Of a DNA stretch of 64,000 nt, positions 4,069 to 61,190 are shown in pieces. The DNA lies in assembly GCF_030028105.1 (NCBI RefSeq), contig NC_092383.1, positions 86,261,921-86,325,920 of the forward strand, given 5' to 3'. The DNA is from Mobula birostris. Taxonomy: Eukaryota. The position numbers and the translations under genes are program-made. How positions within the stretch are numbered: the first letter of the stretch is position 1; every line of letters starts with the position of its first letter. Below the pieces are notes generated by a model. It saw only the letters and a program-made list of their open reading frames with translations, was not told the DNA's origin and searched no databases.

Positions 4069-4389
4069 TGGTGCCATTGATTTCTGTCACGTAACTGCAG
4101 ATCTCTCCGTTGTTGAAGACTGTCACTTTAACCATTGCACTGTATTTTACTCCAAGCTTACTCGAGGCTTTGCAGTAATATTGATGGTGCTGCTGGTTGA
4201 AGGATTGACAACATAGAGCCTGTTTATTGGTATCTGAGATCTTTGGATGCCCAGATGAGGTTTGTTCATACCATGTGTACTGAATGGGAAGGGATCCCTG
4301 GAGAGACTCACAGGAAACTGACACTGAGCCCCCAAGACGGGAGACATTTGCTGGTGACAGATATCGAAGCACAGGAACAGACACAGGTT
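4069..4389 (-). CDS. Unit A C2-type Ig exon (321 nt, phase 1-1)
   Basis: Acceptor TTCCTTCCCACAG, donor GTAAGT, open frame: EPVSVPVLRYL...VSCESLQGSLPIQYTWY...QYYCKAS...ICSYVTEINGT. It has the Ig Cys, Trp and YYC motifs. Confidence 0.92.
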
Positions 4390-4440
4390 CTGTGGGAAGG
4401 AATTCAACAATCAGACTCTGAATGAACATCTGAAAATCAA

Positions 4441-4993
4441 ACACTCTTCTGCCACTTTATTAGCTACACCTGTTCATCTGGTCATTAATGCAAATATCAG
4501 ATTAGTCATTTATGTGGCAGCAACACAGTCCATAAAATCATGCAGACATGGTCAAGATGTCTGGTTGCTGTTTAGGCAAAACATCAGAATAGAGAGGAAA
4601 TGTGCTCTTAGTGACTTTGACTGCGGAATAATAGTTGGTGGCAGATGGAGAGGTCTGAGCATCTCAGAAACTGTTGACCTCCTGGGATGTTCAGGCACAA
4701 CTCTCTCCAGAGTTTACACAGAACGGTGCAAAAAAACCAGAAAGTATCCAGTGAGCAGCAATTCTGTGATCAAAAATGCCTTCTTTATGAGAGAGGTCAG
4801 AGGAGAATGGCCGGACTGGTTCAAGCTGACAGAAAGATGACAGGAGTTTAAATAACCATGTGTTATGACGGTGGTGTGCAGAAGAGTATCTGAACCTTGA
4901 AGTGAGTGGGTCAGAGCGGCAGAAGACCATGAATGTACACTCAGTGGCCTATTTATTAGTTATGAAGATACCTAATGAAGTGGCCATTGAGTG
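4441..4993 (+). mobile_element. Internally deleted Tc1/mariner-type DNA transposon in the V-C2 intron of unit A
   Basis: Left end ACACTCTTCTGCCACTTTATTAG, right end TACCTAATGAAGTGGCCATTGAGTG (inverted), and an internal copy of the left end at 4937-4959. ORF 4514-4840 (LSDFDCGIIVGGR..GLSISETVDLLG) resembles the N-terminal HTH of a Tc1 transposase. Confidence 0.85.
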
Positions 4994-5347
4994 CTTAAAG
5001 GCAGCAACTTGTGAGATATCCGTCACATGTTTGGTGGCTTTCATGAGAAAATGACCTGCCGTAGAAAGGGAAATATTTGGCACTGATATTAATGCAATGG
5101 TAGTTAGGGATGGACAGTGTCTGGACAAAGATCTTGTAATCTGTGCAGAGGCTGAGCAGGAGGAGGAGAAGAATGCTGTTCTTCAGACACATCCACGAGA
5201 TGGGCATTTCTCCATTCAACAAGCTTCACCCTGGGATCAGCACATTGTCACTCCCCAGGACATCTAATGCACAGACCCTTCCCGGAGAAAACATGGATGA
5301 GACATTTATTCTACTGAAGGGACAAAGTCAATCACTGAGAAACCTAC

Positions 5348-5668
5348 CTTCATGTACTTCTAGATGTAAATAATATCTCGTATCAAGACCTGGTGTTCTA
5401 ATTCCACAGCTGTACCATCCTGTATCTCCAGAGTGGTGATCATCCACAGTAACAGTAAATATTTTCTGTTCTGGGTTATCTGTGATTGACACTCGTCCAC
5501 TCCGTCTGTGCTGCCCATTTGTTTCCACTAAAACTGAACACAGTGGAGTCCATCCATCACACCAATACTTTTTGTGTGAGCGGTGCTTTTCTTCATAGTG
5601 ACAATCGATTGTGATCGCTCTTCCCAAAACTCCTTTTACATATTTCTCTGCCCACAATGCACCTGAAA
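5348..5668 (-). CDS. Unit A V-type Ig exon, CD300/pIgR-like (321 nt, phase 1-1)
   Basis: Acceptor CCTCCCTCAG, donor GTAGGT, open frame: VSGALWAEK..ITIDCHY..KYWCDGWTPLC..RVSITDN..FTVT..DTGWYSCG. It has the V-set D-x-G-x-Y-x-C motif plus the extra C-C' cysteine pair typical of CD300/pIgR/TREM domains. Confidence 0.95.
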
Positions 5669-6189
5669 CTGAGGGAGGCATTTTCAGTTTTGAGGGGAAA
5701 GGACCAATTAATGCAAACTAATATTTTTGAACATGACGATAAAAAACCCGTCCAGGTCACGTCCAGCAAGTGGCACGTGTTACCACGGCTAATGATTTTG
5801 GTGTGAAGTGCAGTCAGTGCTGTTACTGTGTCAGCTGTGTCAGTGCTCTCTCCCCTGTGTCAGTACATTGTGGGTTCACTTCCCACTCCAGAGCCCTGAG
5901 CAGAAACCCAGGGCTGACCCTCCAGTGCAGTACTGGGGGACAGCGGCAATATTAAACTTTCAATTACCTCCTATCAGCCCTTCAAATGTACACAAAGTTC
6001 CCAAAGGATTAATTTGGAATACTCCCAGATTTTTGTGTGTGTGTGTCTCAGATTCCAGGAAATTGGAACTGGAGGCGGAGCCTAACGGCAACTCCTTTGC
6101 TGACATTTTGGAAACATCTCTATTTCTATCTTTTGATAGCTCTTTTTTCCCTCTCAAGATTCTTCTGTAGTCCCTGACCTGAAGGTTAC

Positions 6190-6845
6190 ACACTCAATTC
6201 AGTTCTTGGTGGAAATGGGACCTGCTTTCGGGGCCTCACGACTGGTCGCTTTTCGATATGCCAAGGATGCAGCCTGGAAGGTCAGCGCGCCTTCAGGGTG
6301 CCGGCTTTTCGTGGCTCTGGAGGCAGGCGGATTCAAGGCTGGTGAGTCGTGGGAGTACACGGAAGATCGTAAGCGGCGAGCTGGCTGCAGGTTGTGTGCC
6401 CAGAGGCCCGAGCCTTTTGGGCACAGGGCTTGGAAAATACAACACAACAGAATTTTAACACCATAAATCAGCAAGTCGCTTTGTTATGCCTCCCTTCTAC
6501 CTGTGAAACAGGGACACCTCTTTTCCCTTATTAGGGAGCGAGAGCGCCTGCGGTATGTTGAATTACCGGGTGAATGAATAGTCTTTGGGGTACTGCAAGT
6601 CTGTGTCTTTATTTATGCTTTGCTGCATGCTTGAGTGCTCAGTGGGTGGGGTGTTGATGCTTTTTTGCTGGTGGGGGAGGGGGGATCATTGCTTTGCTGC
6701 TGCTTATGCGTGAGAGGGGGAGTTGGGGGGTTCTTTGGGGTTCTAACATTTAATTGTCATTCATTCTTTGAGGCATTCCTCTGTTTTTGTGGATGTATGC
6801 TCAGAAAAAGAATTTCAGGATGTACATTAAATGTATCTATTGAAA
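6190..6845 (+). mobile_element. Non-autonomous retroelement-like insertion in the leader-V intron of unit A
   Basis: GC-rich 5' part and a TG-rich 3' part ending in AAAAAGAATTTCAGGATGTAC. It is absent from the paralogous intron of unit B at ~46.7 kb. Family not identified. Confidence 0.55.
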
Positions 6846-7863: not shown

Positions 7864-7900
7864 CGGGTAGGAAACCAATCAGAAGAACTGAAGTCCACAT
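7864..7900 (-). CDS. Unit A signal-peptide exon (MWTSVLLIGFLP)
   Basis: ATG, 12 mostly hydrophobic codons plus 1 nt, then donor GTGAGT. It joins the V exon in phase to give MWTSVLLIGFLPVSGALW. Three paralogous copies occur in the window. Confidence 0.9.
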
Positions 7901-7968
7901 CTTTTTATTCGCAGAGACCCAGCCAGGACCTATCTGTCCTCAGAGAGAAATAGCTGGGAAATAAAAAT

Positions 7969-8006
7969 GAGGAAGAAAGCAGCAGGGAGTTTGATCAAAA
8001 ACCACA
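7969..8006. promoter_or_regulatory. Candidate proximal promoter of unit A: ETS (GAGGAAG), degenerate second ETS (CAGGGAGT), RUNX (AACCACA)
   Basis: The motifs lie 70-105 nt upstream of the ATG and are positionally conserved in all four units. Function is inferred. Confidence 0.55.
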
Positions 8007-8129
8007 ACTGGAGAGTAGGAAGTGACGATCTTCAAAGCTTTTAGCTATATTTAGCAAGAGAGAAACTTTCAAACAGTTCCCAAGGATTAAATTAAATGCT
8101 GAGAAGAGCTAAAATATCAGGATTAGAAA

Positions 8130-11800: not shown

Positions 11801-11809
11801 GAGAGAGCT

Positions 11810-13325: not shown

Positions 13326-14478
13326 TAGTCATAGTCATAGTCATAGTCGTAGTCATACTTTATTGATCCTGGGGGAAATTGGTTTTCGTTACAGTTGCAC
13401 CATAGATAATAAATAGTAATAAAACCATAAATAGTTAAATAGTAATATGTAAATTATGCTAGGAAATAAGTCCGGGACCAGCCTCTTGGCTCAGGGTGTC
13501 TGACCCTCCAAGGGAGGAGTTGTAAAGTTTGATGGCCACAGGCAGGAATGACTTCCTATGACGCTCAGTGTTGCATCTCGGTGGAATGAGTCTCTGGCTG
13601 AATGTACTCCTGTGCCCAACCAGTATGTTATGTAGTGGATGGGAGACATTGTCCAAGATGGCTTGCAACTTGGACAGCATCCTCTTTTCAGACACCACCA
13701 TCAGAGAGTCCAGTTCCATCCCCACAACATCACTGGCCTTACGAATGAGTTGGTTGATTCTGTTGGTGTCTGCTACCCTCAGCCTGCTGCCCCAGCACAA
13801 AACAGCAAACATGATAGCGCTGGCCACCACAGCCTCGTAGAACATCCTCAGCATCGTCCAGCAGATGCTAAAGGACCTCAGTCTCCTCAGGAAATAGAGA
13901 CGGCTCTGACTCTTCTTGTAGACAGCCTCAGTGTTCTTTGACCAGTCCAGTTTATTGTCAATTCTTATCCCCAGGTATTTGTAATCCTCCACCATGTCCA
14001 CACTGACCCCCCGGATGGAAACAGGGGTCACCCGTACCTTAGCTCTCCTCAGGTCTACCACCAGCTCCTTAGTCTTTTTCACATTAAGCTGCAGATAATT
14101 CTGCTCACACCATGTGACAAAGTTTCCTACCGTAGCCCTATACTCAGCCTCATCTCCCTTGCTGATGCATTCAACTGTGGCCGAGTCATCAGAAAACTTC
14201 TGAAGATGACAAGACTCTGTGAAGTAGTTGAAGTCCGAGGTGTAAATGGTGAAGGGAAGGGGAGACAAGACAGTCCCCTGTGGAGCCCCAGTGCTGCTGA
14301 TCACTCTGTCGGACACACAGTGTTGCAAGCACACGTACTGTGGTCTGCCAGTCAGGTAATCAAGAATCCATGACACCAGGAAAGCATCCACCTGCATCAC
14401 TGTCAGCTTCTCCCCCAGCAGAGCAGGGCGGATGGTGTTGAATGTACTGGAGAAGTCAAAAACCATGACCCTCTCAGT
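13326..14478 (-). mobile_element. 5'-truncated, young Rex1/Babar-type LINE
   Basis: Uninterrupted 343-aa ORF with DFSSTFNTI, GAPQGTVLSP, KFSDD and RLYFLRRL. A (TATGAC)n 3' tail lies at ~13326-13357. The paralogous site at ~52625-52650 is empty. Confidence 0.9.
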
Positions 14479-14939
14479 TACATGAGGCATCCATTGGTAC
14501 TTCCTTAAATTCTGTTTTGTAAGTCATGTAAAGAGCACAGAAGTTCTCAGCATATCCACTGAGAATTGCTTTGGGATGTCCTCAGAAAGGGAAAGGGCCC
14601 CTTTCAGAATCAGAATCAGGTTTGTTTTAACTGTCTTCTGATGTAAAATTCCCTGTTTTGCAGCAGAAAAAAAAACGAGCAAGTTCATTCCCTCAGACTA
14701 TTAATGAGTTTGGGTTTAACAGGTCCAGATTCACAAGTGGGACCACTGTAAATGGAATCATCTCGGGCTAATCAAATCCCATCAGATAACCCTGACTTGT
14801 AGAGGTCAAGAGCTCCTAACAGACTCTAGTGTTTTTGCTTCACATCCTCACACAGCAGGTGAAGACTATTGTGTCATATTCCTCCTTGTCAGTGAGGCAT
14901 TTCAAAGTTTAAAATTCAAATTAAATTTATTATCAGAGT

Positions 14940-15830
14940 ACATATATGTCACCATATACTACCCTGATTGTAGTTACAATAATGAAGTTCACCTTCTGTT
15001 TTATTTCCAAGACATTTTATTCTATGTATGTACATTTATGGGTTACAGGTGCATGTTAGTACTGAGAAAAGTTACACTATCTGTTTGCAGGTTTACACCC
15101 TGATGACCAATGCAAGCTGCAATAATTTGCAGCTCACTCATTTTAATCAGCACCAACTTTATTTTCATGCTTGAGTCTCTTTCTCACTCCATTTCTTCAA
15201 CATGCATTACAATAGGACAGTAGTCGTGCACCTTATCAAAGTTCAAAAAGAGCTGCTGCGCTCTTGTTAGAGAAACGTCACTCTGAAACAATATCCCCTG
15301 CACCATCAGTCTTCAGGACGGATATGTCACTCAGAGATTTGCACTGATATTATTATTATCATTATTATTTATTTTTGTGTATCTATGTGCTTTTTTAACT
15401 ATATGTGTTGTGTGATGTGTGCTGTGTGTAACTGTCTTCTGTGTTTTTCACCTTGGCTCCGGAGGAACATTGTTTTGTTTAGCTGTTACATGTGCATGGT
15501 TGAATGACAAATAAACTTGAACTTCAGATTGAACTTGAAAAGGTCCTTTGCATTTTCTAACTTCATGATTATAATGACAATAGTGTAGTTCACCTCTTAT
15601 TTTCAAGACCCTTTATTGTACATTCATGGGTTACAGTCACAGATCAGTACTGAGAAAAGTTACACCTTCTATTTGCAGATTCACACCCTGATGAACAATG
15701 CAAGCTGCAAAAGTTTGCAGCTCACTCATTTTAGTCAGCACCCAACTTTTATTTCCATTGCTCATTCTTCTTTAAAACCTTTGTACAGTGACCAGAAATT
15801 TTCATGCTGTGTCTCTTTCTCACTCCATTT
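14940..15830 (+). repeat. Tandem pair of a ~300 bp low-copy repeat (~14940-15260 and ~15560-15830)
   Basis: Shared core GGGTTACAG..TACTGAGAAAAGTTACAC..TTTGCAG..TACACCCTGATGA. The second copy is split by the CR1 at 15830 and resumes at ~19610. An inverted third copy lies at ~54010-54230. Confidence 0.8.
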
Positions 15831-26369: not shown

Positions 26370-26460
26370 CTTAGTTTCCCTTGTGAACCATGAGACTGAA
26401 ATAGTGCAGATCAGCAGCAGTGTGAAGAGCAGCCAACGACCAACCTTCCATATCATGAAA
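26370..26460 (-). CDS. Unit B transmembrane exon (FMIWKVGRWLLFTLLLICTISVSWFTRETK)
   Basis: Acceptor CTCTTCCCCTTTGCTCAG (phase 2, matching the stalk exon) and donor GTAGGT. A hydrophobic core is preceded by Lys and Arg. It is the only TM-like exon found in the window. Confidence 0.8.
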
Positions 26461-26874: not shown

Positions 26875-27071
26875 TGTGTCATCACTGATTATTATTCTTC
26901 CATATTGTTCACTTTGCCCATTTGTATTCACTAACAATGTGCTCTGGCAGTCCTACATGAGGCACAAATACTTTGTGTGTGAACGGTATATTGGTGCATA
27001 GTGACAATCGATTGTGACCACTCTTCCCCACAACTCCTCTTATTTATCTTCTGCCCATAAACCACACAAAA
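26875..27071 (-). pseudogene. Truncated pseudo-exon of the V' type inside a late intron of unit B
   Basis: Homologous to 40898-41218 (VTIDCHYAPIYRSHTKYLC...NTNGQSEQYGRIIISD). It has -1/+1 frameshifts, a TAA, an in-frame TAG at 26953-26955, and is truncated after the ISDDT segment. Confidence 0.9.
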
Positions 27072-28159: not shown

Positions 28160-30840
28160 AAAAGATGGCTGCTATTGAGAGCTGAATGTCCAAGGATCTA
28201 CTGTGTATTGGAAAGATAGGTTGATAGGCAGAAGGGGTGGTGTGGCCCTGTGTATAAGAAATAATATTAAATCATTAGAAAGGGATGACAGAGGATTGGA
28301 AGGTGTAGGGTCTCTATGAGTTGAGTTAAGAAATGTCAATGGTAAAAGGACCCTAATGGCAGTTGTGTACAGACCTTCAAACTGCAGCTGGGATGCGGAT
28401 TACAAACTTCAGCAGGAGATAAAAAAGGCATGTCATAAGGGCAATATCATGATAACCTTCAGGGATTTTTACATGAAAACGTCTGGGGAAAGCCAGGTCA
28501 GTACTTGACCTCAAGAGAGAGGATTTGTAGAATGTCTAAGGCATAGTTTTTTAAAACAGCTTGTTATTGAGCCCACTTGGGGATAGGTTGTGCTGGATTG
28601 GGTGTTGTGCAATGATCCGGAGGTGATAAAGAGAGCTAAAGGTTAAGGAACCCTTAGGGAACAGTGATCACAATATGATCATTCACTTTGAAATTTGAGA
28701 AGAAGAAACTAAATTCAAATGTGTTGGTATTTCAGTGGAATAAAGGAAATTACAATGGCATGAGAGGGGAACTGGCCAAAGTTGACTGGAAAGGGACACT
28801 AGCAGGAAGGACAGCAGAGCAGCAATGATTGGAGTTTCTGCGAAAAATGAGGGAAGTGCAAGGCAGATATATTCCAAATAAGAAGAAATTTTCAAATGGA
28901 AGGATGATACTACCATGGCTGACAAGTGAAGTCAGAGCCAAAGTAAAAGCAAAAGAGAGGGCATACAAGGAAGCCAGAGCTAGTGGGAAGATAGAGAATT
29001 GGGAAGATTTGAAAGACTTACAGAAGGAAACTAAGAAGGTCATTAGGAAGGAAAAGATGAATTATGAGAATAAGCTGGTAACTAATATCAAAAAAGATAC
29101 TAAAGGCTTTTTTAAGTATATAAAGGGTAAAAGGGAGTCGAGGGTAGATATAGGGCCAATAGAAAATGCCGTTGGAGATATTGTAATGATAGACACAGAG
29201 ATGGCATATTTTGCAACAGTTTTCACAGTGGAAGACCTCTGCAGTATACCTGATATTCAAGAGTGTCAGGGAAGTGAAGTATGTGCAGTGAAAATTATGA
29301 CTGAGAAGGTGCTCAAGAAGCTTAATGGTTTGAATGTGGATAAATCTCCTGGACCTAATGGAATGTACCCTTGGGTTCTGAAGGAAGTAGCTGGAGAGAT
29401 TGTGGAGGCATTAGCAGTAATCTTTCAAGAATAAATATTTCTGGCATTGTACCAGATGACTGGAAAATTGCAAATGTTATTCCGCTATTTAGGAAGGGTG
29501 GGAGGCAGCAGAAAGGAAACTGTAGGCCTGTTATCCTGACATCAGTGGTTGAGAAGTTTTTGGAATTGATTGTTAGGGATGAAATTACAGAGTACCTGGA
29601 GGCATATTGCAAGATAGGCCAAAGCTAGCAGAGTTTCCTGAAAGGAAAATCCTGCCTGACTAACCTACTGCAATTTTTTGAAGAAATTACTAGCAGGGTA
29701 GGCAAAAGAGATGCAGTGGATGTGGTGCACTTGGATCTTCCGAAGGCCTTTGACAAGGTTCCACACATGTGGCTATTTAGCAAGTTAAGAGCCCAAGGAA
29801 TTACAGGGAAGTTACTAGCATGGGTGGAGTATTGGCTGATCGGTAGAAACAGAGAGTGGTAATAAAGGGATCCTATTCTGGCTGGCTGCCAGTTACCAGT
29901 GGAGTTGCACAGGGTTTGGTGTTGGGACTGCTGCTTTTTACAATGTACAACAATGATTTGGTCTATGGGATTAATGGATTTGTAGCTAAATTTGCTGATG
30001 ATACAAAAATAGGTGGAGGAGCGGGTAGTGTTGAGGAAACAGAGAGCCTGCAAAGAGCCTTAGATAGTTTAGGGGAATGGGCAAAGAAGTGGCAAATGAA
30101 ATACAATGTTGGAAAGTGTATGGTCATGCACTTTTGTGGAAGAAATAAATGGGCAGACTATTATTTAGATGGGGAGATAATTCAAATTGCAGAGATGCAA
30201 AGGGACTTGGGAGTCCTTCTGCAGGATACTCTAAAGGTTAACCTCCAGGTTGAGTCAGTGGTGATAAAGGCGAATGCAATATTGGCATTCATTTCTAGAG
30301 GTATAGAATACAAGAGCAGGGATGTGATGTTGAGGGATTATAAGAGAATGATTCCAGGAATGAAAAAGTTACTATATGGGAAACGTTTGGCAGCTCTTGG
30401 GCTGAATTCCCTGGAGTTCAGGAAAATAAGGGGGGATCTCATAGAAACATTCTGTATGTTAAAAGGCCTGAATGGATTCGAAATGGCAAAGTTATTTCCC
30501 ATGGGAGGGGAGTCTAGGACAAGAGGGCATGACTTCAGGATTGAAGGATGTCCATTTAGAACAGAAATGCAGAGAAGTTACTTTAGTCAGAGAGTCGTAA
30601 ATCTGTGGAATTTTTTGCCATGAGCAGCTGTGGAGACCAAGTCATTTTGTGTATTTAAGGCAGAGATAGATAGGTTCTTGTTTAGCTAGGGTAATCAAGA
30701 GCTATGGGTAATGAAGGGTATGGGGAGAAGGCAGGCGAGCGGGGATGACTGGACGAATTGGATCAGCCCATGATTGAATGGCGGAGCAGACTCGGTGGGC
30801 CAAATGGCCTACTTGTGCTCCTTTATCCTATGGTCTTATC
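28160..30840 (+). mobile_element. Degenerate CR1 LINE ORF2 (EN-RT) with 3' end
   Basis: ORFs 28829, 29371 and 29856 carry DKSPGP, NCRPVILTS, GVAQG and FADDTK. The tail CCTATGGTCTTAT lies at ~30830. Confidence 0.92.
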
Positions 30841-31133: not shown

Positions 31134-31199
31134 TGGTGTCACGTCAAAATCTTTTCCCCTCTGGACTGTGGAACATCTTCAACAGACCCAGTAGAAAGC
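31134..31199 (-). CDS. Unit B candidate second stalk exon (66 nt, phase 2-2) containing an in-frame TGA
   Basis: Acceptor ATACATTCACTGCAG and donor GTGAGA. It reads (R)LSTGSVEDVPQSRGEKILT*H with TGA at 31139-31141. Confidence 0.5.
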
Positions 31200-32689: not shown

Positions 32690-34700
32690 TGAACCTTAAG
32701 TCAGTGCTCCCCAGATTCCATCAGAACATGGACTTTGCAACGAGAGGGGAGAATGTGTTGGACCTTGTTTACACAAACATTCCCGACCCCACCTCAGCTA
32801 CTCAGACCACGTCTCTGTTATGCTAATCCCAGCGTACAGACAGCACATCAGGCGCGCCAGACCTGTTCAGAAGCAGGTGAAAACCTGGCCAGCAGGAGCC
32901 ATCTCTGCTCTTCAAGAATGCTTTGAGCACACTGACTGGCACATGTTCAGGGAGGCTGCAACTGACGGCGACTCTACCAGCTTAGAGGAGTACACGGCAT
33001 CAGTGACTCAGCAAGTGCGTCAATGACGTCACTGTGGCCAAGACCATCACTACACGCGCTAACCAGAAGCCATGGATGACCACAGAGGTGCGTGCGCTGC
33101 TGAGGACCCGTGACTCCACCTTCAGAGCAGGCGACAGGGCAGCCCTAACAACAGCAAGGGCCAAACTGTCCCGGGCCATCAAAAAGGCAAAGCGTGCACA
33201 CGCCCAGCGAATCCACAGCCACTTCCAGGATAGGGGCGGCACATGGCACCTGTGGAAAGGCATTCAGAACATCACCAACTACAAGACAACACCACCTGCC
33301 TGTGCTGGTGATGCCTCCCTCCCAGATGCGTTGAATAACTTCTATGCTCGTTTTGAGGTGAAAAATGACATGGCAGTGAGGAAGACCACTCCTCCTCCGA
33401 ACAACCAGGTGCTGTGTCTTACCTTGGCTGATGTGAGGAGAACCCTGTGCAGGGTCAACCCATGGAAGGCTGCTGGACCAGACAATATTCCTGGCAAAGT
33501 GCTTAGAGTATGTGAAGACCAGCTAGCTGAGATTCTCACTGACATCTTCAACATCTCCGAGCAGCACCGTCGTTCCTACGTGCTTCAAGGCCGCCACCAT
33601 CGTCCCCGTGCCGAAGAAGTCTTCAGTGTCCTGCCTCAACAACTACCATCCCGTCACACTCACAACCATCATCATGAAGTGTTTCGAGAGGCTCGTCATG
33701 GAGCACATCAAGACCCTGCTGCCCCCCTCACTGGACCCCCTGCAGTTCACGTACCGTCCCAACCGTTCAACAGACGATCCCATTGCCATCACCCTCCACC
33801 TGGACAAAAAAGACACTTACGTTCGAATGCTGTTCATAGACTTCAGTTCAGCATTCAACACAATCATTCCTCAGAAACTGATTGGAAAGCTGAGCCTACT
33901 GGGCCTGAACACCTCCCTCTGCAACTGGATCCTAGACTTCCTGACTGGGAGATCTCAGTCCGGATTGGAAGCAGCACCTCCAACACCATCACACTGAGCA
34001 CGGGGGCCCCCCAGGGCTGTGTGCTCAGTCCACTGCTGTTCACTCTGCTGACCCACAACTGTGCTGCAACACACAACTCGAACCAAATCACCAAATTTGC
34101 CAATGACACGGCCGTGGTGGGTCTCATCAGCGAGAATTATGAGTCAGCTTACAGAGAGGAGGTGCAGCGGCTAACAGACTGGTGCAGAGCCAACAACCTG
34201 TCCCTGAATGTGAACGAAACAAAAGAGTTGTTGTTGACTTCAGGCTTCAGGAGGACACGGAGCGACCACTCTCTGCTGAACATGAATGACTCCTCCGTAG
34301 AGATCGGTAACAGCACCAAATTTCTTAGTGTTCACATGGCGGTGAATCTCACCTGGTCCCTCAACACCAGCTCCAGAGCAAAGAAAGCCCAGCAGCGTCT
34401 CTACTTTCTGCGAAGGATGAGAAAAGTCCATCTCTCACCTCCCGTCCTCACCACAGTCTACAGAGGTTGTATTGAGAACATCCTGAACAGCTGCATCACT
34501 GCCTGGTTCGGAAATTGCACCATCTTGGATCGCAAGACCCTTCAGCGGATAGTGAGGTCAGCTGGGTAGATCATCGGGATCTCTCTTCCCACCATTACCG
34601 ACATTTACACCTCACGCTGCATCCGTAAAGCAAACAGCATTATGAAGGACTCCATGCACCCTTCATACAAACTCTTCTCCCTCCTGCCATCGAGCTGCCA
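32690..34700 (+). mobile_element. Rex1/Babar-type LINE ORF2 fragment with frameshifts
   Basis: ORFs 33034 and 33608 carry [41 protein letters not shown] and QRLYFLRR. Confidence 0.9.
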
Positions 34701-35420
34701 TAGCAATCCATAGAAATGGATACATTAACAAAGGTTAAGAGACATTTTGACAGATGTGTGGATAGGAAAGGCTTAGAACAGGGCTTCACAAACTTTTTTA
34801 TGCCATGGACCTTAATTCATCAACTTCAGTTTGTTTATTTATGTGTAATTAATCTGTAGATTTCATTCTCACTTTCATAAACTATTATGCATTATGTATA
34901 CTGCAGTGCTTTGTATCTTGGTTTGGAGAAACATTGCCTCACTGGACGGTATACATGTATATAGTTAAATGACAATAAACTTGACTGGACTGGACTGGAC
35001 TTGATCCCAGGTTGGGAGCCCCTGGCAGAGAAGGATATGGAATAAATAAAATTAAATGTGCTGAACTTAGATGAACATCCTGGTTGGCTTGGACGAGTCA
35101 GGCTGAAGGGCCTGTTGTTCTAATATATATCAAAGACATTATGATTCTATACATGAGCTTCAACTGCTATGCTTAAATTTTTAAATAATTGGGGAAGAGA
35201 AATTTTTCTTTGATCTCAGGCTTGACGCATGTTCAAGAAAATCAGGAATGCTCAGTTTCCAAGATATGAGTTTGTTGAAGTTAATCATGTCAAATATGAT
35301 AAACACTAGTTGAAGAGAAACAGATTTCTCTCCCAACTGGCTCTACTTGGAAGCAGTAGCAGTGAAACCACCCGCAGCGAAAACCTTATACTTTACATCT
35401 GGGCTGGAGTAGTTTCTTAC

Positions 35421-35475
35421 CTTTGTGCGGTTGTCATCAATTCTGTCACAGTATTTTCACAGAAATCAATTCTCC
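35421..35475 (-). CDS. Unit B stalk exon 1 (GRIDFCENTVTELMTTAQ; 55 nt, phase 1-2)
   Basis: Strong acceptor TTTTATTTTATTTTCTTTTAACAG and donor AG|GTAAGA. The only stop-free frame is the one that matches the C2' phase. It is Thr-rich and has one Cys. Confidence 0.75.
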
Positions 35476-38076: not shown

Positions 38077-38397
38077 CCATGCTGTTGACTTCAATCACAT
38101 TTCTGCAGCTGCTGACACTGTTGGACATGGACACACTGACCACTTCACTGGACTTCTCTCCATTAATATTTGAGGCTTTGCAATAATACAGATAATTTTT
38201 GTATTTTATGGATTGGCAATGTAGATCAAGTTTATTTGTGTCAGAGATCTTTGAATCCTCAGATGGCGTCTTTTCATACCATGAGTACTGAATGGGAAGG
38301 GATCCATGGACAGACTCACAGGACACTGACACGGAGTCCCCACAATTTGAGCCATTTGTTTGTGGTGAAAATCGAAGCAAAGGAAGAGACACAGGTT
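38077..38397 (-). CDS. Unit B second C2-type Ig exon (C2', 321 nt, phase 1-1)
   Basis: Acceptor TTCTGTTCCACAG, donor GTAAGT, open frame: EPVSLPLL..NCGDSVSVSCES..YSWY..LHCQ..YYCKAS..SSCRNVIEVNSM. Confidence 0.92.
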
Positions 38398-40897: not shown

Positions 40898-41218
40898 CAT
40901 CAGATACTTGGAGATGCACATCAAACACTGGATCATTGCCAAAGGTTGTAATTCCACATCTGTAAGGTCCTGTATCATTAGAGACAAGATTCTCCATAGT
41001 AACAGTAAATATTCCTAGGGATGTGTTATCTCTGATTGTCATTCTTCCATACTGCTCATTTGTCCCATTTGTATTCACTAACGATGTGCATTGGCGACCC
41101 CACAGGCGGCACAAATACTTTGTGTGTGAACGGTACATTGGTGCATAGTGACAATCGATTGTGACCGCTCTTCCCACAACTCCTCTTCCTTCATCTTCTG
41201 TCCATAAAGCACCTGAAA
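40898..41218 (-). CDS. Unit B second V-type Ig exon (V', 321 nt, phase 1-1)
   Basis: Acceptor TTTTCTCCCTCAG, donor GTAGGT, open frame: VSGALWTEDEG..VTIDCHY..KYLCRLWGRQC..DTGPYRCG..VHLQVSD. Confidence 0.93.
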
Positions 41219-43484
41219 CTGAGGGAGAAAATCTTCAGAAAATGGACAGGTAAAATCAAATTTACACAAGCAGGCTCAAGTTTCAAGATTATTTAATGTC
41301 ATTTCCTGTACAAACGTGTAAACTGGAATTAAATCGTTGTTATGCTGGATCTAAATGCAGCAGAAAAAAACACAAAAGATAATGAATACAATTAAAATAG
41401 CTAAAGATGTTTTATTTACAACTGACACTGTGTTACAAGGAATCTGCCACAGTGTCAATTGATATAAATAAATTCCTCACAGACAGAGAAGACAATAACA
41501 TCGTCCCTCCTCACGTGCTCCCAGCTCTTCACAAGTAGCAATTTTTATTTGATTGGAGTCATCATTGTCACTGCCCACTAATGTCTCAGTGTGTTTCCAT
41601 ATTTCTGAGTCAATAGATTACTGATCCAGTCCCACTCCTGGCAGGTGAGCCCAAGATCAGTGGGGGGTAACTTACTGGAGGCAGGATCGACCTGAATTTG
41701 CAAAGGCAAGATCTGATTTGGGATAGTCAACATGATCTTGTGCATTGGAAATCCTCCCCCAAAACTATTTGACTGAGTTTTTTTTGAGAGACGATGAAAG
41801 GACAGGACCTTAGAGATTAGCAATTTTTGTTTAGCAAGGTTTATGACCATACCTTGCATAGCAGACTGATCTGTAATGTGAGATCACATGGTAAGCTACC
41901 TGGATGGATATTGAATAGGCTTGGTGGAAGGATACAGACTGTGGTAGTGGAGTGTTGGTTTTCTGACAACATCAGACTTTATCACCAGCAATGTGCCATC
42001 AGGATCGTTGCTGTTATTTGTTAACCACTCTTATTGTCATCAATATTAATAATCTGGAATGAAACTGTAGGTGGCATGATTAATAAGTTATGGGTGAGAC
42101 AGCAGTGTGGTGGACAGTGGCAAGAGTTGTGTAAGTTTACACGAGGATCTTGAAAATGAGCCGGTGTTCAGCCCCATTATTCTGTGCCAGCAAGCTGCCC
42201 CCTCCCCACCTGAGCCTGTATTGTCTGTTTGCATTTGACCTGTCTCCCTCTCTTCTTGGTCCTACTATCAGGTGGAAGGTGCAGGAGCCTTGGGGCCCAC
42301 ACCGCAGGGTTCGTCAACAGTTGTTGTCCTGCAGCTATCAGGCTCCTGGATTGGTTTCACTCGCCTCAGCACTGAACTGACTCTGCAGCTGTGGACTCAC
42401 TTTCAGAGACTCTGCCTCTCATGTTCTATGTATTATTTGTTTACATAGTTTTATTATTTGCACGATTCATCATCGCTTGCACATTGGTTTTTTGTCAGTC
42501 TTTGTTGTGTGTGGTTTTACATGGATTCTATTGTGTTACTTTGTTTTGTGGGCAAAGGTATGGTGGATAATCACAGTCTTTATCCCAGGGTGGGGGAGTT
42601 GAAAACTAGAGACCCTCGGCTTAAGGAGTGAGGGAAAATTCTTAGAGATCCCGGAGCAGCCGTGTTTTACACACACAGCCGTGTGTGCATGGAAAAGGCT
42701 GTCAGAGGAAGTACTAGAGATGGTTACAAATACACTATTTAAAATACATTTGGACAAGTTCATATATAGGCAAGTTTTAGAAGGATACGAGACAAATGCA
42801 GTGAAATGGGAGAAGCTCAGGAAGACACTGTGGTCAGCACGGATGATTTGGGGTGAAACTCCTGCGTCCATAACCTATAACTCCCTGACTCTGCAGCATC
42901 CTCTCTAAACTGGAACATGCTTTTAAAAGGATAAATTCAGAATTCTATTTCATTGCATAGATGTGACAGCTCATGGGATCACAGCCTATCAGATTGCACT
43001 TCAATCTCAACAATCAAAGTTCAAAGTATACTTATTATCAAAGAATCTATACTATATACAACCTTGAGATTCACCTCCTTCCAGGCAATCACAAAAAAAT
43101 AGAACATCCCAATATACAGAAAAAAGAGCAAATCAAAGTAAGCAAATAACATTTGGAACTGAAATTCACAAAACTGAGGCCACAGCCAAGAAGCCAGTCA
43201 TCACTGTAGTCAATTCATGAGGCCATTAATTGCCAACCACAGCCTCAGTTCAGCGTAAAGACACGTAAACCTTCTGTGCAGCAAGCTGAACACCAGCCAT
43301 CCCTCACCTTGGACTGACATTCCTTTAGTGATTAAAAGGGAATTGAAGGTTTATTATCCTTGTTGTAATCATGAAATGCAGCAGCCTTGTTCATAGAAGG
43401 AATGGATTTCCTTCTCATGTCTCAAAGCGAGTGAGGTTTTTTATTTAACAAACAAAAACCCAATTTCAGCGGTTAGTAATTTAC

Positions 43485-44787: not shown

Positions 44788-45108
44788 CGCTGCCATTGAT
44801 TTCTGTCACGTAACTGCAGATATCTCTGTTGTTGAAGACTGTCGCAGTAACCATTGCACTGGATCTTGCTCCAAGCCGATTTGAGGCACTGCAGTAATAT
44901 TGCTGGTGTGTGTGCTTGAAGGATTGACAATGCAGAGTCAGTTCATGGGTATCTGAGATCTTCGGATACCCAGATGAGGTTTGTTCATACCATCTGTATT
45001 GAATGGGAAGGGATCCCTGGAAGGACTCACAGGAAAGTGACACTGAGCCCCCGAGACGTGAGACATTTGCTGGTGACAGATATCGAATCACAGGAACAGA
45101 CACGAGTT
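44788..45108 (-). CDS. Unit B first C2-type Ig exon (321 nt, phase 1-1)
   Basis: Acceptor TTTCCCACAG, donor GTAAGT, open frame, paralog of 4069-4389. Confidence 0.92.
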
Positions 45109-45912: not shown

Positions 45913-46233
45913 CATCATTTACTGTTAGTTCTAAATTAAATCTTGTATCGAGACCTGGTGTTGTAATTCCACAGCTGTACCATCCTGAATCTCCAGAGTG
46001 AAGATCTTCCATAGTAACAGTAAATATTCTCCGTTCCGGGTTATCTGTGATTGACACTCGTCCACTCCGTCTGTGCTGCTCATTTGTTTCCACTAAAACT
46101 GAACAATGGAGATTCCATCCATGGCACCAATACTTTGTGTGTGAGCGGTACTTTTCTTCATAGTGACAATCGATTGTGATCGCTCTTCCCACAACTCCTC
46201 TTACAGATTTCTCTGCCCACAATGCACCTGAAA
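45913..46233 (-). CDS. Unit B first V-type Ig exon, CD300/pIgR-like (321 nt, phase 1-1)
   Basis: Open frame with the same splice sites as the unit A V exon: KYWCHGWNLHC and DSGWYSCG. Confidence 0.95.
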
Positions 46234-47589: not shown

Positions 47590-47629
47590 CAGGTAGGAAA
47601 CCAGTCAGAAGGATCAACGTCCACAGCAT
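47590..47629 (-). CDS. Unit B signal-peptide exon (MLWTLILLTGFLP)
   Basis: ATG, 13 codons plus 1 nt, donor GTGAGT, in phase with the V exon. Confidence 0.9.
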
Positions 47630-54934: not shown

Positions 54935-55134
54935 CTTCCCGACCCTGTAGCCCATTGGTTTCTACTGAAACTGAATATTGGTGACCAATATTCCATGGCA
55001 CCAATACATTGTGTGGGACTGATTTACTGTTGCATAGGGACAATCATTTATGATCACCTTTCCTACAACTCCTCTTACCCCATCTCTCCATCTCCACAAT
55101 CCATCTCTCTCTAACCAAAAGCAAACTGAAATTG
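54935..55134 (-). pseudogene. Unit C degenerate V exon
   Basis: Reads VRGVVGKVI..DCPYATVNQSHTMYWCHG..ETNG with frameshifts, a small insertion, a mutated upstream acceptor (AG to AA) and a missing 3' half. Confidence 0.8.
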
Positions 55135-55929
55135 AAAGCAAAATTCTTGAGGATCTGAAGAGAATTCAGAATTGAAGCGAATGAGGGTGAGAGACAACAT
55201 GATAGAGATGTATAAGATGATCAGAGGCAGAGATCAAGCGGAGATCCAGAGAATATCTCAGGGCAGAAATGGCCAATGTGTGGGGGAATAATTTCAAGGT
55301 GATTGGAGGAAAGGATTGAGAGGGTGTCCGAGGCATGTTCTTTACACAGAGTGGTGGGAGCATGAAAAACCTTGCCAGGAGTGATGGTAGAGGCAGATAC
55401 ACTTAAAAGACTCTTAGATAGGCTTATGGATTATAGGAGAGCTTTAGAAGGGATGGATTATATTGATCTTATAGTAACACACAAATGCCAGAGAAACTTA
55501 GCAGGCCAGGCAGCACCTATAGAAACAGGTACTGTCCACGTTTCGGGCTCAGACCCTTCAGCGTCTACTCCCCAATTTTCAGGAACAGTAATTACCCTTT
55601 CATCATCATACTCCTGAACCGATGTGGATAACTTCACTCACTTGAACTATGAACTGATTCCACAACACATGGAATCAGTCTCACTTTCAAGGATTCTGCA
55701 GCTCATACTCTCAGTATAAAAATAATGTATTAAAATATGTGTATTTTTATCTGCACTATTTGTCTTCTTTTGCACCTTGGTTGTTTGTCTGACTTCATTT
55801 ATGTAGGTTTACACAAATTCTATCACATCGCTTTATTTTTCTCTAAACGCCTGAAAGAAAATGAATCTCACTGTAGTATCTGCTGACATGCATGTACTTT
55901 GATAATAAATTTACTTTGACTTTGACTAG

Positions 55930-56594: not shown

Positions 56595-56631
56595 TGGGTA
56601 GGAAACTAATCAGAAGAATCAAAATCCACAT
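56595..56631 (-). pseudogene. Unit C signal-peptide exon (MWILILLISFLP), intact but followed by a dead V exon
   Basis: ATG, 37 nt, donor GTGAGT, paralog of the unit A and B leaders. Confidence 0.85.
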
Positions 56632-56738: not shown

Positions 56739-57997
56739 GTGAGCTAACTTAGGCTGATATGTGAACATATGAAAAGCAACACACACAAAATTCTGGAGGA
56801 ACTCAGTAAGTCAGGAAGCATCTATGTAAATGAACATACAGTCGATATTTTGGGCCGGAATCCTTTATCAGGTCTGAAAAGGAAAGGGGAAGACACCAGA
56901 ATGAAAGGATGGGGTGAGGGGATGCAGGCTAGCTGGAAAGTGATTGGTGAAGCCAAGTGGGTGGGTAAGGTAAAGGGCTGGAGAGGAAGGAATCTCGTAG
57001 GAGAGGACCGTGGAACATAGGAGAAAGGGAAGGAGAAGGGGACCCAGGGGGAAGTGATAGGAAGGTGGGATGAGGTAAAAGGCCAGAATATCAAAAGCTC
57101 TTAATTATATTTGTCAAAATTAAAGACAATTCCCAATAACAGATAGAAATAATGAGAAAAGTCGAATTGTTAGATGCCAGCGACAGCAGATGTTATAATC
57201 TGCAGCAAAAATAAATTGCTGGAGGAGTCATGATGCAGCAGCTTAATCTGCAATGTTGACCATTCTGCCGGACATTAAAAGTGACAGGTGCGTAAAAAGG
57301 ACCCGAAGGATTATTGGCAAACCAAGTTACCCCGACCACAAACTGTTCCAGCTGCTACGATCCGGGAAACAGTATCGCAGCATAAAAGCCAGGACCAACA
57401 GGCTCCGGGACAGCTTCTTCCACCAGACCATCAGACTGATTAATTCACACTGACACAATTGTATTTCTAAGCTATATTGACTGTTCTGTTGTATATCTTA
57501 CTGTTCATACTCTTTATTACAAATTACTGTAATTTGCACATTGTACATTCAGATGGAGATGTAACGTAAAGATTTTTACTCCTTATGTGATGGATGTAAG
57601 AAGTAAAGTGAATTCAATTCAATTCAATCTGCAGATGCTATCTGACTCCCTAAGTTCCTCCAGAAGCTTTTTCTCTTGCTTGAGTTAAAATGTTATCCAT
57701 GATGAGTCATCAAGTAAAGGGTTGATGACAAAAAGTTAACTGAGGAAGGAAAAGGAATGAGAGGAAGAGAAAAAACCATGGTCAAGACGTTCAGTTGTTC
57801 TTCAGAACAAACATCAGAATGGGAAGAAATGTGTTCTAAGTGACTTTATTGTGGAATGGTTGTAGGTGCCAGATGGAGTAGTTTGAGTATCTCAGAAACT
57901 GATGATCTCCTGGGATTTGCACACATTACAGTCTCTAAAGTTCACAGAGGATGGAGCAAAAAATTGAAAAAAGGAAATCTTGTGAGTAGTGGTTCAG

Positions 57998-58231
57998 TGC
58001 CAATTCCAGGCACTGCAGTAATATTGATGGTACTTGCATTGAAGGATTGACAACGTCGAGCCACTTCATTGGTGCCTGATACCGTTGGATACCCAGATGA
58101 GGTTATTTCAGACCATGTGTGCTGAATGGGAAAGGATCCCTGCAAGGACTCACAGGAAACTGACACTGAGTCCCTGAGACGTGAAACATTTGCTGTTGAC
58201 AGATATCGAAGCACAGGAGAAGACACAGGTT
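57998..58231 (-). pseudogene. Unit D truncated C2 exon
   Basis: Reads EPVSSPVLRYL..SCESLQGSFPIQHTW.. with a frameshift before HQYYCSAWN. The 3' end and donor are replaced by a Tc1 fragment (~57778-57997). Confidence 0.88.
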
Positions 58232-58364
58232 CTGTGGAAAGGAATTCAACAATCAGACACTAAATGAACATATGAAATCAAAAACTCCTCTACCACTTTA
58301 TTAGGTACACCTGTTCACCTGTTTGTAAATGCAAATATCTAATTAGCCAATCATGTGGCAGCGT

Positions 58365-59455: not shown

Positions 59456-59699
59456 AACACAGTCCATAAAAGCATGCAGACATGGTCCAGAGATTCAGTT
59501 GTTGTTCAGGTCAAACATCAGAATGTGGAAGAAGTGTGATCAAAGTAACTTTACGCATGAAATGATTGTAAGCGGTTGTTTGAGTATCTCAGATAATGCA
59601 GGTCTCCTGGAATTTTCACACTGTCTCTAGAGTTGGTAGAGAATAGTGCAAAAAACAAAAAAAAAAACATCCATGGAGCAGCAATTCTATAAGCATAAA

Positions 59700-59991
59700 A
59701 TCTCGTATCAACACCTGTTGCTGTAATTCTACAGCCGTACCATCCTGTATCTCCCGTGTGAAGATCCTCCATAGTAACAGCAAATACTCCCCATTCCGGG
59801 TCATCTGTGATTGACACTCGGCTACTCCGTCCGTGTTGCCCATTTGTTTCCACTAAAACTGAACATTGTTGACTCTATCCATGGTACCAATACTTTGTGT
59901 GTGAGCGGTACGTTGCATCAGTGATAATTGATTGTGATCGCTCTTCCCACAACCCCTCTTACATCTTTCTCCTCACACAATGCACCTGAAA
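59700..59991 (-). pseudogene. Unit D V exon, pseudogenised
   Basis: The first Ig Cys is mutated (TGT to TAT), a 2-nt deletion creates TGA, YWC has become YWY, and the 3' end and donor are deleted and fused to Tc1 sequence. Confidence 0.9.
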
Positions 59992-61046
59992 CTGAGGGAG
60001 GCATTTTCAGATTTGAGGGAAAGGAACAACTTCATGCAAACAAATACCTTTGAACACGAGTGTAAAAACAGGTCCAGGTCACGTCCAGAATGTGAACCAT
60101 GATGAGCAACCAATAATTCCGGTATGAAGTGCAGCCGAACGTACACAAATATAACAGCCGTTTCATTTAGGATGCTGCTCTAATTTCTGATGGAAATCTT
60201 ATATTTTGCATCTATCAGGTATTTCTATGTGTAGTTGGAAGGTGGTGTAACAGTGGTCATTACCACTTCAGTGTCAAGAACTCCAAGCATGATTTCAATT
60301 TCCATAAGGATATATTGTGTGTTTAAATCCAATTTATTAATTATTTCTAGAATTTATAACCACATATCAATGATGGTAATAATCAACTACCAGATTTTCA
60401 AAATCCCATCTGGATCAGAAAAGCCTTTAGGGACAGAAATCTCTCATCCCTACCCACCCTGGCTTATCTTTGACTCCAGATCTAGTTGTATTCTTTACTT
60501 AATTGCCCCAGTGAAATGGCCCAGGAAAGACACTGATATCAAGACAATGTCAGCGTATTCCCTGCAGAGTGAAATCAGATTCCAGCAATGGTAGACCTGA
60601 TATTCCCACTGAACAGCCTCCAGGAGATTTCAGTAGCTGGATATATTCTCCCCCCACTTGGCTACACACTACTCCCTTTTTCCCTTTATCTGCTTCCACC
60701 TCTCAGCCATCTTCAAAATCCACCCCTTTTCCTCCCCATTCCATTTGCCTGTCATGCTTCACCCCTCCTCAGTCCCTGACCACCTAGTGGACCCAGATTC
60801 ACATCTCCCCCTCTCCTATTTACACTATCTTCCTCTCCACTCAGACTTGATGCAGAGACTCAGCCTAAACTGTTCGACAGTTCTCTTCCCCCTAACAGAT
60901 GCTGTTTGGCTCACTGACTTCCTCCGGAAGTTTGCTCTGAACTCCAGATTCAGTCATCTGTAGTGTCTGCACACATCAAGTTCTGTTCTGCAAATGGTGG
61001 ACGACCTCCAAATCAATGCAAATGGCCAGTGCTTGCTGTCACTCAC

Positions 61047-61083
61047 CAGGTAGGAAACCAATCAGAGGAATTGAAGTCCACAT
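61047..61083 (-). pseudogene. Unit D signal-peptide exon (MWTSIPLIGFLP)
   Basis: ATG, 37 nt, donor GTGAGT. Confidence 0.85.
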
Positions 61084-61151
61084 TGCTTTATTCACAGAGA
61101 CCCAGCCAGGACCTGTCTGTCCTCAGCAAGAAGTAACAGTGAAATAAAAAT

Positions 61152-61190
61152 GAGGAAGATGGCAGCAGGAAGTTCAATAAGAGAACCACA
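61152..61190. promoter_or_regulatory. Unit D promoter-like ETS/ETS/RUNX triplet (GAGGAAG, CAGGAAGT, AACCACA)
   Basis: All three motifs are intact at the conserved spacing. Confidence 0.5.

Follow-up and report, generated by a model that had tools for sequence, protein, structure and literature searches.

The window, i.e. the whole stretch of 64,000 nucleotides analysed here, contains a tandem array of immunoglobulin (Ig)-domain receptor units, all elements of which lie on the minus strand (Table 1). A pattern scan of the window for a 26-nt leader/donor signature returned exactly four matches, all on the minus strand (0 expected by chance), each comprising an ATG, a hydrophobic peptide of the form MW(T/I)..L(I/L)GFLP and a phase-1 GTGAGT donor. 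The leaders start at 61083, 56631, 47629 and 7900, share conservation over some 130 nt ahead of the ATG as a putative promoter, and are each followed by a V exon of the CD300/pIgR type with an extra pair of cysteines. Three leader-bearing units contain C2 exons resembling FcRL5; the fourth, at 56.6 kb, consists of a V fragment without C2. Altogether, the four units and six V copies are found within 57 kb. An earlier sequence-only reading of this DNA had described four paralogous minus-strand units with leader exons, V exons carrying a CD300/pIgR-type extra C-C' disulfide, and C2 exons in three units, all of which is borne out.

The central unit is an intact gene of eight exons (47629-26068, minus strand; termed gene X) that encodes, in this order, a leader, V, C2, V, C2, a stalk, a transmembrane (TM) segment and a short tail. 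The reading frame of 505 amino acids is uninterrupted, and 14 of 14 splice junction sites are canonical AG/GT. All four Ig exons are 321 nt long and of phase 1-1. The second V-C2 pair (exons 4 and 5) has no leader of its own; together with the exons for the stalk (35.4 kb) and for TM and tail (26 kb), it extends the sequence-only reading. The product is 98.0% identical to the Mobula birostris protein XP_072134926.1 ("polymeric immunoglobulin receptor-like"), the gene of which spans 21,589 bp, versus 21,562 bp in the window. RefSeq already carries the gene under an automatic "pIgR-like" name. The four-Ig splice form is predicted, on the basis of this automatic RefSeq model and the GenBank entry of skate MDIR5 (see below). 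The alternative stalk exon is present in the window as an in-frame 42-nt form without a GT donor; a GT one base upstream shifts the frame. A further 66-nt "stalk exon" at 31134-31199 has AG/GT flanks but found no homologue support by tblastn, and was excluded from gene X. The introns are rich in LINE reverse-transcriptase fragments.

Table 1. Receptor exons and pseudo-exons in the window, listed by unit.
Feature	Positions	Strand	Remarks
Gene X exon 1, leader MLWTLILLTGFLP	47590..47629	-	phase-1 GTGAGT donor; 100% match to homologue P0016 aa 1-13
Gene X exon 2, V domain D1, extra C-C' Cys pair	45913..46233	-	321 nt, phase 1-1; 96% identical to P0016 D1
Gene X exon 3, C2 domain D2 (C2a), FcRL5-like	44788..45108	-	321 nt, phase 1-1; 97% identical to P0016 D2
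Gene X exon 4, second V domain D3, without own leader	40898..41218	-	321 nt, phase 1-1; 98% identical to P0016 D3
Gene X exon 5, second C2 domain D4 (C2b)	38077..38397	-	321 nt; clade only in stingrays/mantas, support 100/100
Gene X exon 6, stalk GRIDFCENTVTELMTTAQ	35421..35475	-	100% match to P0016
Alternative stalk exon of M. birostris isoforms (P0014, P0024)	34980..35021	-	overlaps repeat-like tract
V'' pseudo-exon, 5' half of D3-type V exon with in-frame stops	26875..27071	-	81% identical to 41021-41418
Gene X exon 7, transmembrane, conserved W-K-V-G-R-W motif	26370..26460	-	100% match to P0016
Gene X exon 8, short cytoplasmic tail KPDESDPPRVVYKVK and stop codon	26068..26115	-	
Pseudogene unit U1, leader exon	61047..61083	-	
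U1 V pseudo-exon	59698..59995	-	in-frame stops, frameshift, two conserved Cys replaced
U1 C2a pseudo-exon	57997..58241	-	frameshift before F-strand YYC, stop in shifted frame; no Pfam match
Pseudogene unit U2, leader exon	56595..56631	-	
U2 V fragment, degenerate and truncated, no C2 after it	54992..55141	-	
Unit U5, leader exon MWTSVLLIGFLP	7864..7900	-	
U5 V exon, intact, AG/GT boundaries	5348..5668	-	
U5 C2a exon, intact, phase-1 donor	4069..4389	-	gene runs on past window start

Both units upstream of gene X, U1 and U2, are pseudogenes. Unit U5 (7900-4069) is intact as far as the window reaches, and homology to part of the C2a-D3 interval of gene X (42708-43391) is found downstream of its C2a exon (1656-2763). 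The sixth of the V copies (V'') is broken and located in an intron of gene X, about 400 nt before the TM exon. Comparison of gene X with U5 gives dN/dS ratios of 1.11 for V and 0.91 for C2a. These values of about 1 between paralogous Ig exons support the view, already expressed in the sequence-only reading, of a tandem birth-and-death family with pseudogenes. The cluster evolves via duplication, shuffling of exon modules and decay, and comprises the two pseudogene units, the stranded V pseudo-exon and paralogues with this dN/dS in their Ig exons.

The V exons match the Pfam V-set family (E-values from 2e-13 to 1e-5), with the canonical pair of cysteines 65 residues apart. Their extra cysteines (YWC...xC; Cys37 and Cys44 of the domain) align to the cysteines of the C-C' disulfide in pIgR D1 and show little or no variation among 17 homologues. 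The closest solved single-domain relative is CD300LF (about 77 bits), and pIgR domains also match. The C2 exons match Pfam Ig_3/Ig_2/Ig_C17orf99, and their canonical cysteines are 46 residues apart, a C2/I-like spacing; human FCRL5 (9loc) is their best solved relative (E 2e-33), and CD22 d6-d7 is found as well. The assignment of the gene X domains to the V and C2/I sets is accordingly a prediction from sequence. These relatives in structure databases agree with the earlier proposal of a CD300/pIgR-like V joined to an FcRL-like C2. An AlphaFold2 model of D1-D2, computed from a 17-row alignment, was too poor for use (pLDDT 42.7). In the C2 domains we propose a putative extra disulfide between an E-strand cysteine and a post-G cysteine. 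The stalk of gene X carries a cysteine 14 residues after the post-G-strand cysteine of C2b.

Modular domain immune-type receptors (MDIR) are a cartilaginous-fish family known since 2006, when Cannon and colleagues described it from a skate (Immunogenetics 58:362, as cited in PMC3031540); the description followed here draws on this citing paper and on database names and sequences. The gene X product matches skate MDIR5 (ABC86800.1) with an E-value of 1e-157 at 100% coverage. Global alignment with MDIR5 of the clearnose skate (501 versus 505 amino acids) is colinear and displays 59.2% identity over 500 aligned residues, by which we assign gene X to the MDIR family. MDIR2, of the layout V-C2-ITIM, is matched as well (E 6e-62), and a protein of the elephant shark (AFK11143.1) is already named MDIR2. 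Other properties of the MDIR family are found here too: an ectodomain built from a variable number of CD300/pIgR/TREM-like and FcR-homologue-like Ig modules; a type I membrane protein with a charged TM segment, ITIM tails or neither, gene X having an arginine-bearing TM; and a complex multigene family, with many paralogues per species in RefSeq. Among 86 homologues, 36 have the architecture V-C and 12 have V-C-V-C, the latter from sharks, skates and rays; V-V-C and V-C-C also occur. The mixture of V and C2 was found in Chondrichthyes only, in 84 of 84 word-search matches and in every V-C architecture among the best 150 HMMER representatives. Thus a lineage-specific family, as predicted earlier, is supported among the matches searched, and the predicted cartilaginous-fish host agrees with the best match being the manta ray M. 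birostris (98%).

In domain trees, D2 of gene X groups with D2 of MDIR5 (support 95/86) and D3 with D3 of MDIR5 (96/83). The placement of D1 relative to MDIR5 is ambiguous, and D4 falls into a separate clade of C2 domains from stingrays and mantas. Judged by sequence, gene X is a member of the MDIR family with MDIR5 layout; it is apparently not a clean one-to-one orthologue of MDIR5, because D4 fails to group with D4 of MDIR5. The sequence-only reading had called the V-C2 architecture unusual and could not say whether it had been described. It has been, as the V-C2-V-C2-TM-short-tail layout already occurs in skate MDIR5, which aligns over the full length. That reading had also named one-to-one orthologues of MDIRs with the same architecture as the case that would speak against it; the same layout and family are indeed found, strict orthology only for some domains (D2, D3). 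Gene X adds a member to a known family and does not represent a novel architecture. Taken together, the window very probably represents part of a tandem MDIR cluster of a manta or devil ray, with a four-Ig, putatively activating-type receptor of MDIR5 layout at its centre.

The homologues fall into two classes regarding TM segment and tail. One class consists of 23 proteins (22 homologues and gene X) with a W-x-[VM]-x-R-W motif in the TM segment, none of which (0/23) has an ITIM; 22 of the 23 have tails of at most 36 amino acids (19 of these at most 25), and one Gnomon model has 83. The other class comprises 24 proteins with an uncharged TM segment and one to three ITIM-like motifs. There is zero overlap between the two, which suggests a paired receptor family. 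Encoding of both signalling types in the window itself was considered and rejected, as tblastn with MDIR2, P0007 and P0008 found no ITIM tail exon there. The tail of gene X comprises about 20 residues after the TM core and has no signalling motifs.

On the gene model, the gene X product is a type I membrane protein with an ectodomain of two V-C2 modules in tandem. The V domains are CD300/pIgR-like, with two disulfides each, and the C2 domains FcRL5/CD22-like, followed by a short cysteine-bearing stalk, a TM helix in which a conserved arginine (W-K-V-G-R-W) lies close to the outer end, and a tail about 20 residues long. We hypothesize that the V domains would bind a ligand and, as the tail is inert, that the TM arginine would recruit an ITAM adaptor through which the signal passes. 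By analogy with activating CD300, KIR, NKp46 and FcalphaRI, gene X may be the activating-type partner of ITIM-tailed MDIRs encoded elsewhere in the family. However, the arginine lies at the margin of the hydrophobic core, where it might simply serve as a flanking or stop-transfer charge. Since Cannon and colleagues reportedly classed MDIR5 in 2006 as having neither activating nor inhibitory characteristic motifs, adaptor coupling by a boundary arginine is something that we infer and do not regard as established.

It is conceivable that V-C2a and V'-C2b-TM are two genes, one for a secreted or GPI-type two-domain protein and one for a membrane receptor, the four-Ig RefSeq model being a fusion made by prediction. 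Three stingray RefSeq models (P0002, P0003, P0004) indeed stop after V-C2a with short, odd C-termini, M. birostris models that skip domains exist (P0024, V-C2b; P0001, C2a-C2b), and some very long (V-C)n models, such as P0087 with 1254 amino acids, look like fusions. However, the 3.5 kb before the second V contain no leader and no signal-peptide-like mini-exon, while control intervals yield true leaders; a fifth leader was sought there and not found, and the second V was rejected as an independent unit. A phase-1 donor closes the C2a exon, an in-frame terminal exon was not identified, and the four-domain order is shared by skate MDIR5 (ABC86800.1) and by V-C-V-C models in 12 homologues, so we consider a split into two genes quite improbable. 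Still less probable, to the point of being very nearly dismissed, is a decay of the whole cluster in which gene X, though seemingly intact, would be silent or without function. Clear pseudogenes make up two of the four units with a leader, a V pseudo-exon is stranded in an intron, the introns are full of LINE fragments, and dN/dS between paralogues is about 1; yet gene X has kept its open frame of 505 amino acids with canonical junctions and all invariant structural residues (cysteines, tryptophan and the DxGxYxC motif), and it matches the M. birostris gene in span and at 98% identity.

The receptors may also be imagined as the elasmobranch counterpart of pIgR/Fcalpha-muR or FcRL, with V domains binding polymeric IgM/IgW or IgNAR. 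The RefSeq name points in this direction, the V domains align to D1, D4 and D5 of pIgR, including the HTKYWC segment on the CDR1 side, and the C2 domains resemble FCRL5, which binds IgG. On the other hand, CD300LF gives a single V domain a better score than does any individual pIgR domain, and nothing in the tail of about 20 residues corresponds to the long cytoplasmic part needed by pIgR for transcytosis. The idea is weakened further by the all-V, five-domain "pIgR-like" proteins that cartilaginous fish possess in addition (e.g. Narcine XP_069798182.1) and that are better candidates. Moreover, the family is large, fast-evolving and paired, with dN/dS of about 1, a profile closer to that of innate paired receptors than to that of one conserved Ig transporter. 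A literature search on shark pIgR/CD300 and on lipid binding by DICP provided nothing usable. We regard such an Ig receptor as unlikely in the extreme sense of only a slight chance. Similarly slim is the prospect that MDIR5-type proteins, with their strictly conserved W-x-V-x-R-W motif and inert short tail, activate cells through an adaptor once their CD300/pIgR-like V domains have bound polymeric IgM/IgW or a danger signal of phospholipid nature, as an elasmobranch counterpart of Ig receptors of the Fcalpha/muR type; if true, this would overturn the original view of MDIR5 as devoid of signalling capacity.

As part of a tandem MDIR array, the manta-ray cluster offers a clean genomic view of how MDIR genes are built and decay: each Ig domain corresponds to one 321-nt phase-1 exon, and V-C2 modules are repeated within the gene. 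In sharks and rays, it is the one MDIR family to which the RefSeq labels "pIgR-like", "CMRF35-like" and "Fc receptor-like" refer. The clean split between arginine-bearing TM segments with short tails and ITIM-bearing proteins suggests that MDIR5-type proteins are activating partners, which would be a small revision of the 2006 description and implies no new kind of receptor.

The pIgR ectodomain consists of V domains only (five in mammals, two in teleosts), and its long tail carries sorting signals. Gene X shares the V-domain type, all five pIgR domains aligning to its V, but differs by its interleaved C2 domains and by a tail about 20 residues long. In mammalian CD300 proteins, one V domain sits on a mucin-like stalk and C2 domains are absent; the family has paired activating (charged TM) and inhibitory (ITIM) members. 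Gene X V shares with CD300/CMRF35 (CLM) the second disulfide (C-C') and the core GRVSI.D.P...FTVT...L...D.G.Y.CG, yet two of the four Ig domains that the gene encodes are C2. Six Ig domains of FCRL5 (9loc) can be aligned to the C2 exons, as can CD22 d6-d7. FcRL tails carry ITIM or ITAM-like motifs; in contrast to the C2-only plan of FcRL, gene X has V domains and no such tyrosine motif, and C2-type relatives outside Chondrichthyes in the HMMER search had no CD300-type V. The M. birostris models XP_072134926.1 and XP_072134927.1 ("isoform X1") have the same eight coding exons and gene span, XP_072134926.1 differing from gene X by ten amino acids over 505 residues, which makes the window an allele, a different assembly or a sister species of Mobula; its pIgR name does not fit the architecture. 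The closest described relative is MDIR5 of Rostroraja/Raja eglanteria, of the Rajiformes, whereas gene X belongs to the Myliobatiformes and has its D4 in a C2 clade observed in stingrays and mantas only. Both share the order leader-V-C2-V-C2-stalk-TM-tail, the W-K-V-G-R-W motif, the cysteine-containing stalk and a C-x14-C motif across the last C2 and stalk, and their D2 and D3 are mutually the closest domain types.

A 26-nt pattern that takes in the leader exon's end together with its donor has exactly four matches in the window, where none is expected. Each of the four leader copies has an ATG, encodes a hydrophobic peptide and carries a phase-1 GTGAGT donor, and about 130 nt 5' of the ATG are conserved in each unit. 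These matches coincide with the four minus-strand units proposed by the sequence-only reading. The V-like open frames match Pfam V-set (E 2e-13 to 1e-5), and the C2-like frames match Ig_3, Ig_2 or Ig_C17orf99 in three cases out of four, the copy at 58.1 kb having no Pfam match. Comparison of the window with itself identifies the Ig frames as paralogous DNA segments and reveals an extra V copy at about 27.0 kb. Base composition is about 42% GC, N runs are absent, and LINE-type reverse-transcriptase (RT) fragments are abundant throughout. Both the introns of the cluster and the stretches between its genes are occupied by LINE-type RT ORFs; in two such ORFs the 'ALKBH8_N' model also matched downstream of the RT region.

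Further exons of the central leader-bearing gene were located by tblastn, using homologues retrieved first with the C2 frame and afterwards with a ray protein of full length. Eight exons join to encode an uninterrupted 505-aa protein, with AG at all acceptors and GT at all donors; the Ig exons, encoding domains D1 to D4, are all 321 nt long and of phase 1-1 (4/4). The product shows 98.0% identity to XP_072134926.1 of Mobula birostris ('polymeric immunoglobulin receptor-like isoform X1'), and the gene spans 21,562 bp in the window versus 21,589 bp for the gene of that entry. The leader pattern was not found in the 3.5 kb 5' of the second V-C2 pair, and a scan for mini-exons combining an ATG, a hydrophobic stretch and a phase-1 donor gave none before the second V, while recovering the true leaders in both control intervals. 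As no separate leader serves the second pair, the alternating V-C2 arrangement is best read as a single gene with two V-C2 modules.

Features of the window, with positions and strand
Feature	Position	Strand	Remark
U1 (pseudogene unit)	61.1 kb	-	V exon: stops, frameshift, lost Cys residues; C2 exon frameshifted
U2 (pseudogene unit)	56.6 kb	-	only a degenerate V fragment kept
Leader exon	47629-47590	-	central gene
V (D1) exon	46233-45913	-	central gene
C2a (D2) exon	45108-44788	-	central gene
V' (D3) exon	41218-40898	-	central gene
C2b (D4) exon	38397-38077	-	central gene
Stalk exon	35475-35421	-	central gene
TM exon	26460-26370	-	central gene
Tail exon and stop	26115-26068	-	central gene
V pseudo-exon (D3-type, 5' half)	27071-26875	-	in-frame stops; in long intron, ~400 nt before TM exon
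Alternative stalk exon, 42 nt	34980-35021	-	in other M. birostris isoforms
V-like open frames	~5.5, 41.0, 46.0, 59.7 kb	-	Ig character
C2-like open frames	~4.2, 38.2, 44.9, 58.1 kb	-	Ig character
LINE-type ORF	33034-34569	+	Pfam RVT_1
LINE-type ORF	13459-14490	-	Pfam RVT_1
LINE-type ORF	1-1565	+	Pfam RVT_1
LINE-type ORF	29268-30623	+	Pfam RVT_1

The V pseudo-exon and its upstream intron are 81% identical to 41021-41418, and it is what remains from a duplication or deletion in the past. The half-exon stranded before the TM exon suggests that the present gene was born of a deletion fusing two tandem copies of an MDIR (modular domain immune-type receptor; a cartilaginous-fish family). The alternative stalk exon is embedded in a repeat-like tract of GTCCA repeats followed by 'tcaagtttattgtcat'; since an in-frame GT donor is absent in the window, this exon may have come from the exonisation of a repeat and be either lost or unproductive in this copy. 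A 66-nt AG/GT-flanked candidate stalk exon at 31134-31199 (-) was rejected: stops fall in each frame or close to the segment's end, and none of the tested homologues aligns with it.

In the units at 47.6 and 7.9 kb the leader, V and C2 exons are all intact, and their splice sites are canonical. The 3' end of the second of these units (7.9-4.1 kb) lies at a phase-1 donor, and the DNA downstream of its C2 exon is homologous, in the self-comparison, to the central gene's intron between C2a and V'. This unit most likely continues like the central gene past the window start. The last 28 residues of a Mobula hypostoma RefSeq model (P0020), an odd C-terminus, find a 64% match at 15738-15821 (-); because this site sits in repeat-rich DNA between genes, the terminal exon of that model is probably spurious or repeat-derived.

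Against solved structures, the V exon matched all pIgR domains; its best single-domain match is CD300LF/CLM-1 (~77 bits), with NKp44, the IgM receptor FAIM3 (FcmuR) and TREM2 ranking lower. The two extra V cysteines (YWC...xC) align with pIgR D1's additional Cys pair and are invariant or nearly so among 17 homologous modules. For the C2 exon, human FCRL5 ranks first among solved relatives (9loc; E 2e-33 as a sum over six domains), with titin Ig domains and CD22 d6-d7 next. Between the canonical cysteines the distance is 65 residues in V and 46 residues in the other domain type, the usual V and C2/I spacing, respectively. The sequence-only reading described these domains, CD300/pIgR-type V and FcRL-like C2, correctly. 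The C2 domains have a conserved additional Cys in the 'L.L.C' strand, and a C-x14-C motif extends across the C2b exon end (38077-38110) and the stalk exon (35421-35475) (-), likewise in skate MDIR5. These cysteines may form an intradomain pair, or the stalk Cys may stay free and serve dimerisation.

One V-C2 module, searched exhaustively with HMMER against 1.84 billion representatives, had 3220 matches. Among the best 150 examined, only chondrichthyan proteins score strongly to both V and C2 profiles; the top non-chondrichthyan matches there are either all-V ('pIgR-like' proteins of reedfish, a mormyrid and a caecilian) or all-C2 (paddlefish CD22-like and a wrasse CEACAM5-like). All-V five-domain 'pIgR-like' proteins exist in cartilaginous fish too (Narcine).

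In the region 3' of the last Ig domain, homologues fall into two classes without overlap. A W-x-[VM]-x-R-W TM start is present in 23 proteins, including the window product, and none of these has an ITIM; their tails are at most 36 aa long in 22 (at most 25 aa in 19), one model having 83. The other class (24 proteins) combines an uncharged TM with a long tail in which between one and three ITIM-like motifs occur. Conservation of the Arg motif extends from rays to the hexanchiform and carcharhiniform sharks. Arg-TM signalling has known analogues in NKp46, FcalphaRI and the activating CD300 and KIR receptors, and by this analogy the TM Arg would recruit an ITAM adaptor. We infer on that basis that the window gene may be an activating-type member of a paired receptor family. 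MDIRs reportedly contain between one and six Ig domains, which belong to four subfamilies; MDIR1 is said to have a charged TM residue, MDIR2 and MDIR3 ITIMs, and MDIR4 and MDIR5 no characteristic motifs. The dN/dS values between the two intact window paralogues (V 1.11, C2a 0.91) would fit either relaxed or diversifying selection acting on the ectodomain. As a guess, the ligand might be a phospholipid, as in CD300, or an Ig.

All 84 proteins obtained in the ray-protein search come from Chondrichthyes (sharks, skates, rays, sawfish, elephant shark); among them are clearnose-skate MDIR5 (ABC86800.1, 501 aa; E 1e-157, 100% coverage) and MDIR2 (ABC86796.1); an elephant shark protein, AFK11143.1, is already named MDIR2. 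In RefSeq models from Mustelus, Rhinoraja and Leucoraja (P0087-P0090) V and C2 domains alternate, with as many as eleven in a model (1254 aa); these are either very long MDIRs or predictor fusions of tandem genes. The window gene belongs to the MDIR family, described in Cannon et al. 2006, Immunogenetics 58:362 (as cited in PMC3031540), and RefSeq already lists it, with an automatic name that misleads. The sequence-only reading was right in its observation and in placing a birth-and-death family with these domain affinities in cartilaginous fish, but the architecture is not new, as skate MDIR5 has the same V-C2-V-C2 layout.

V and C2 domains were placed in separate maximum-likelihood trees. 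Window D3 and MDIR5 D3 share one starred clade (96/83), and window D2 clusters with MDIR5 D2 (95/86). Window D1 falls among batoid domains, MDIR2 D1 included, whose grouping is poorly resolved, D4 lies in a clade of only stingrays and mantas (100/100), and shark domains cluster in groups of their own. From these groupings, the gene is an MDIR with MDIR5 layout, in a family so reshuffled that strict one-to-one orthology is limited to part of the protein: D2 and D3 group with their MDIR5 counterparts, while D4 sits in its separate clade and D1 is poorly resolved. Aligned end to end, MDIR5 and the window protein are 59.2% identical over 500 residues; they have in common the V-C2-V-C2 order, a stalk Cys 14 residues past the last C2's post-G-strand Cys, and W-K-V-G-R-W at the TM start.
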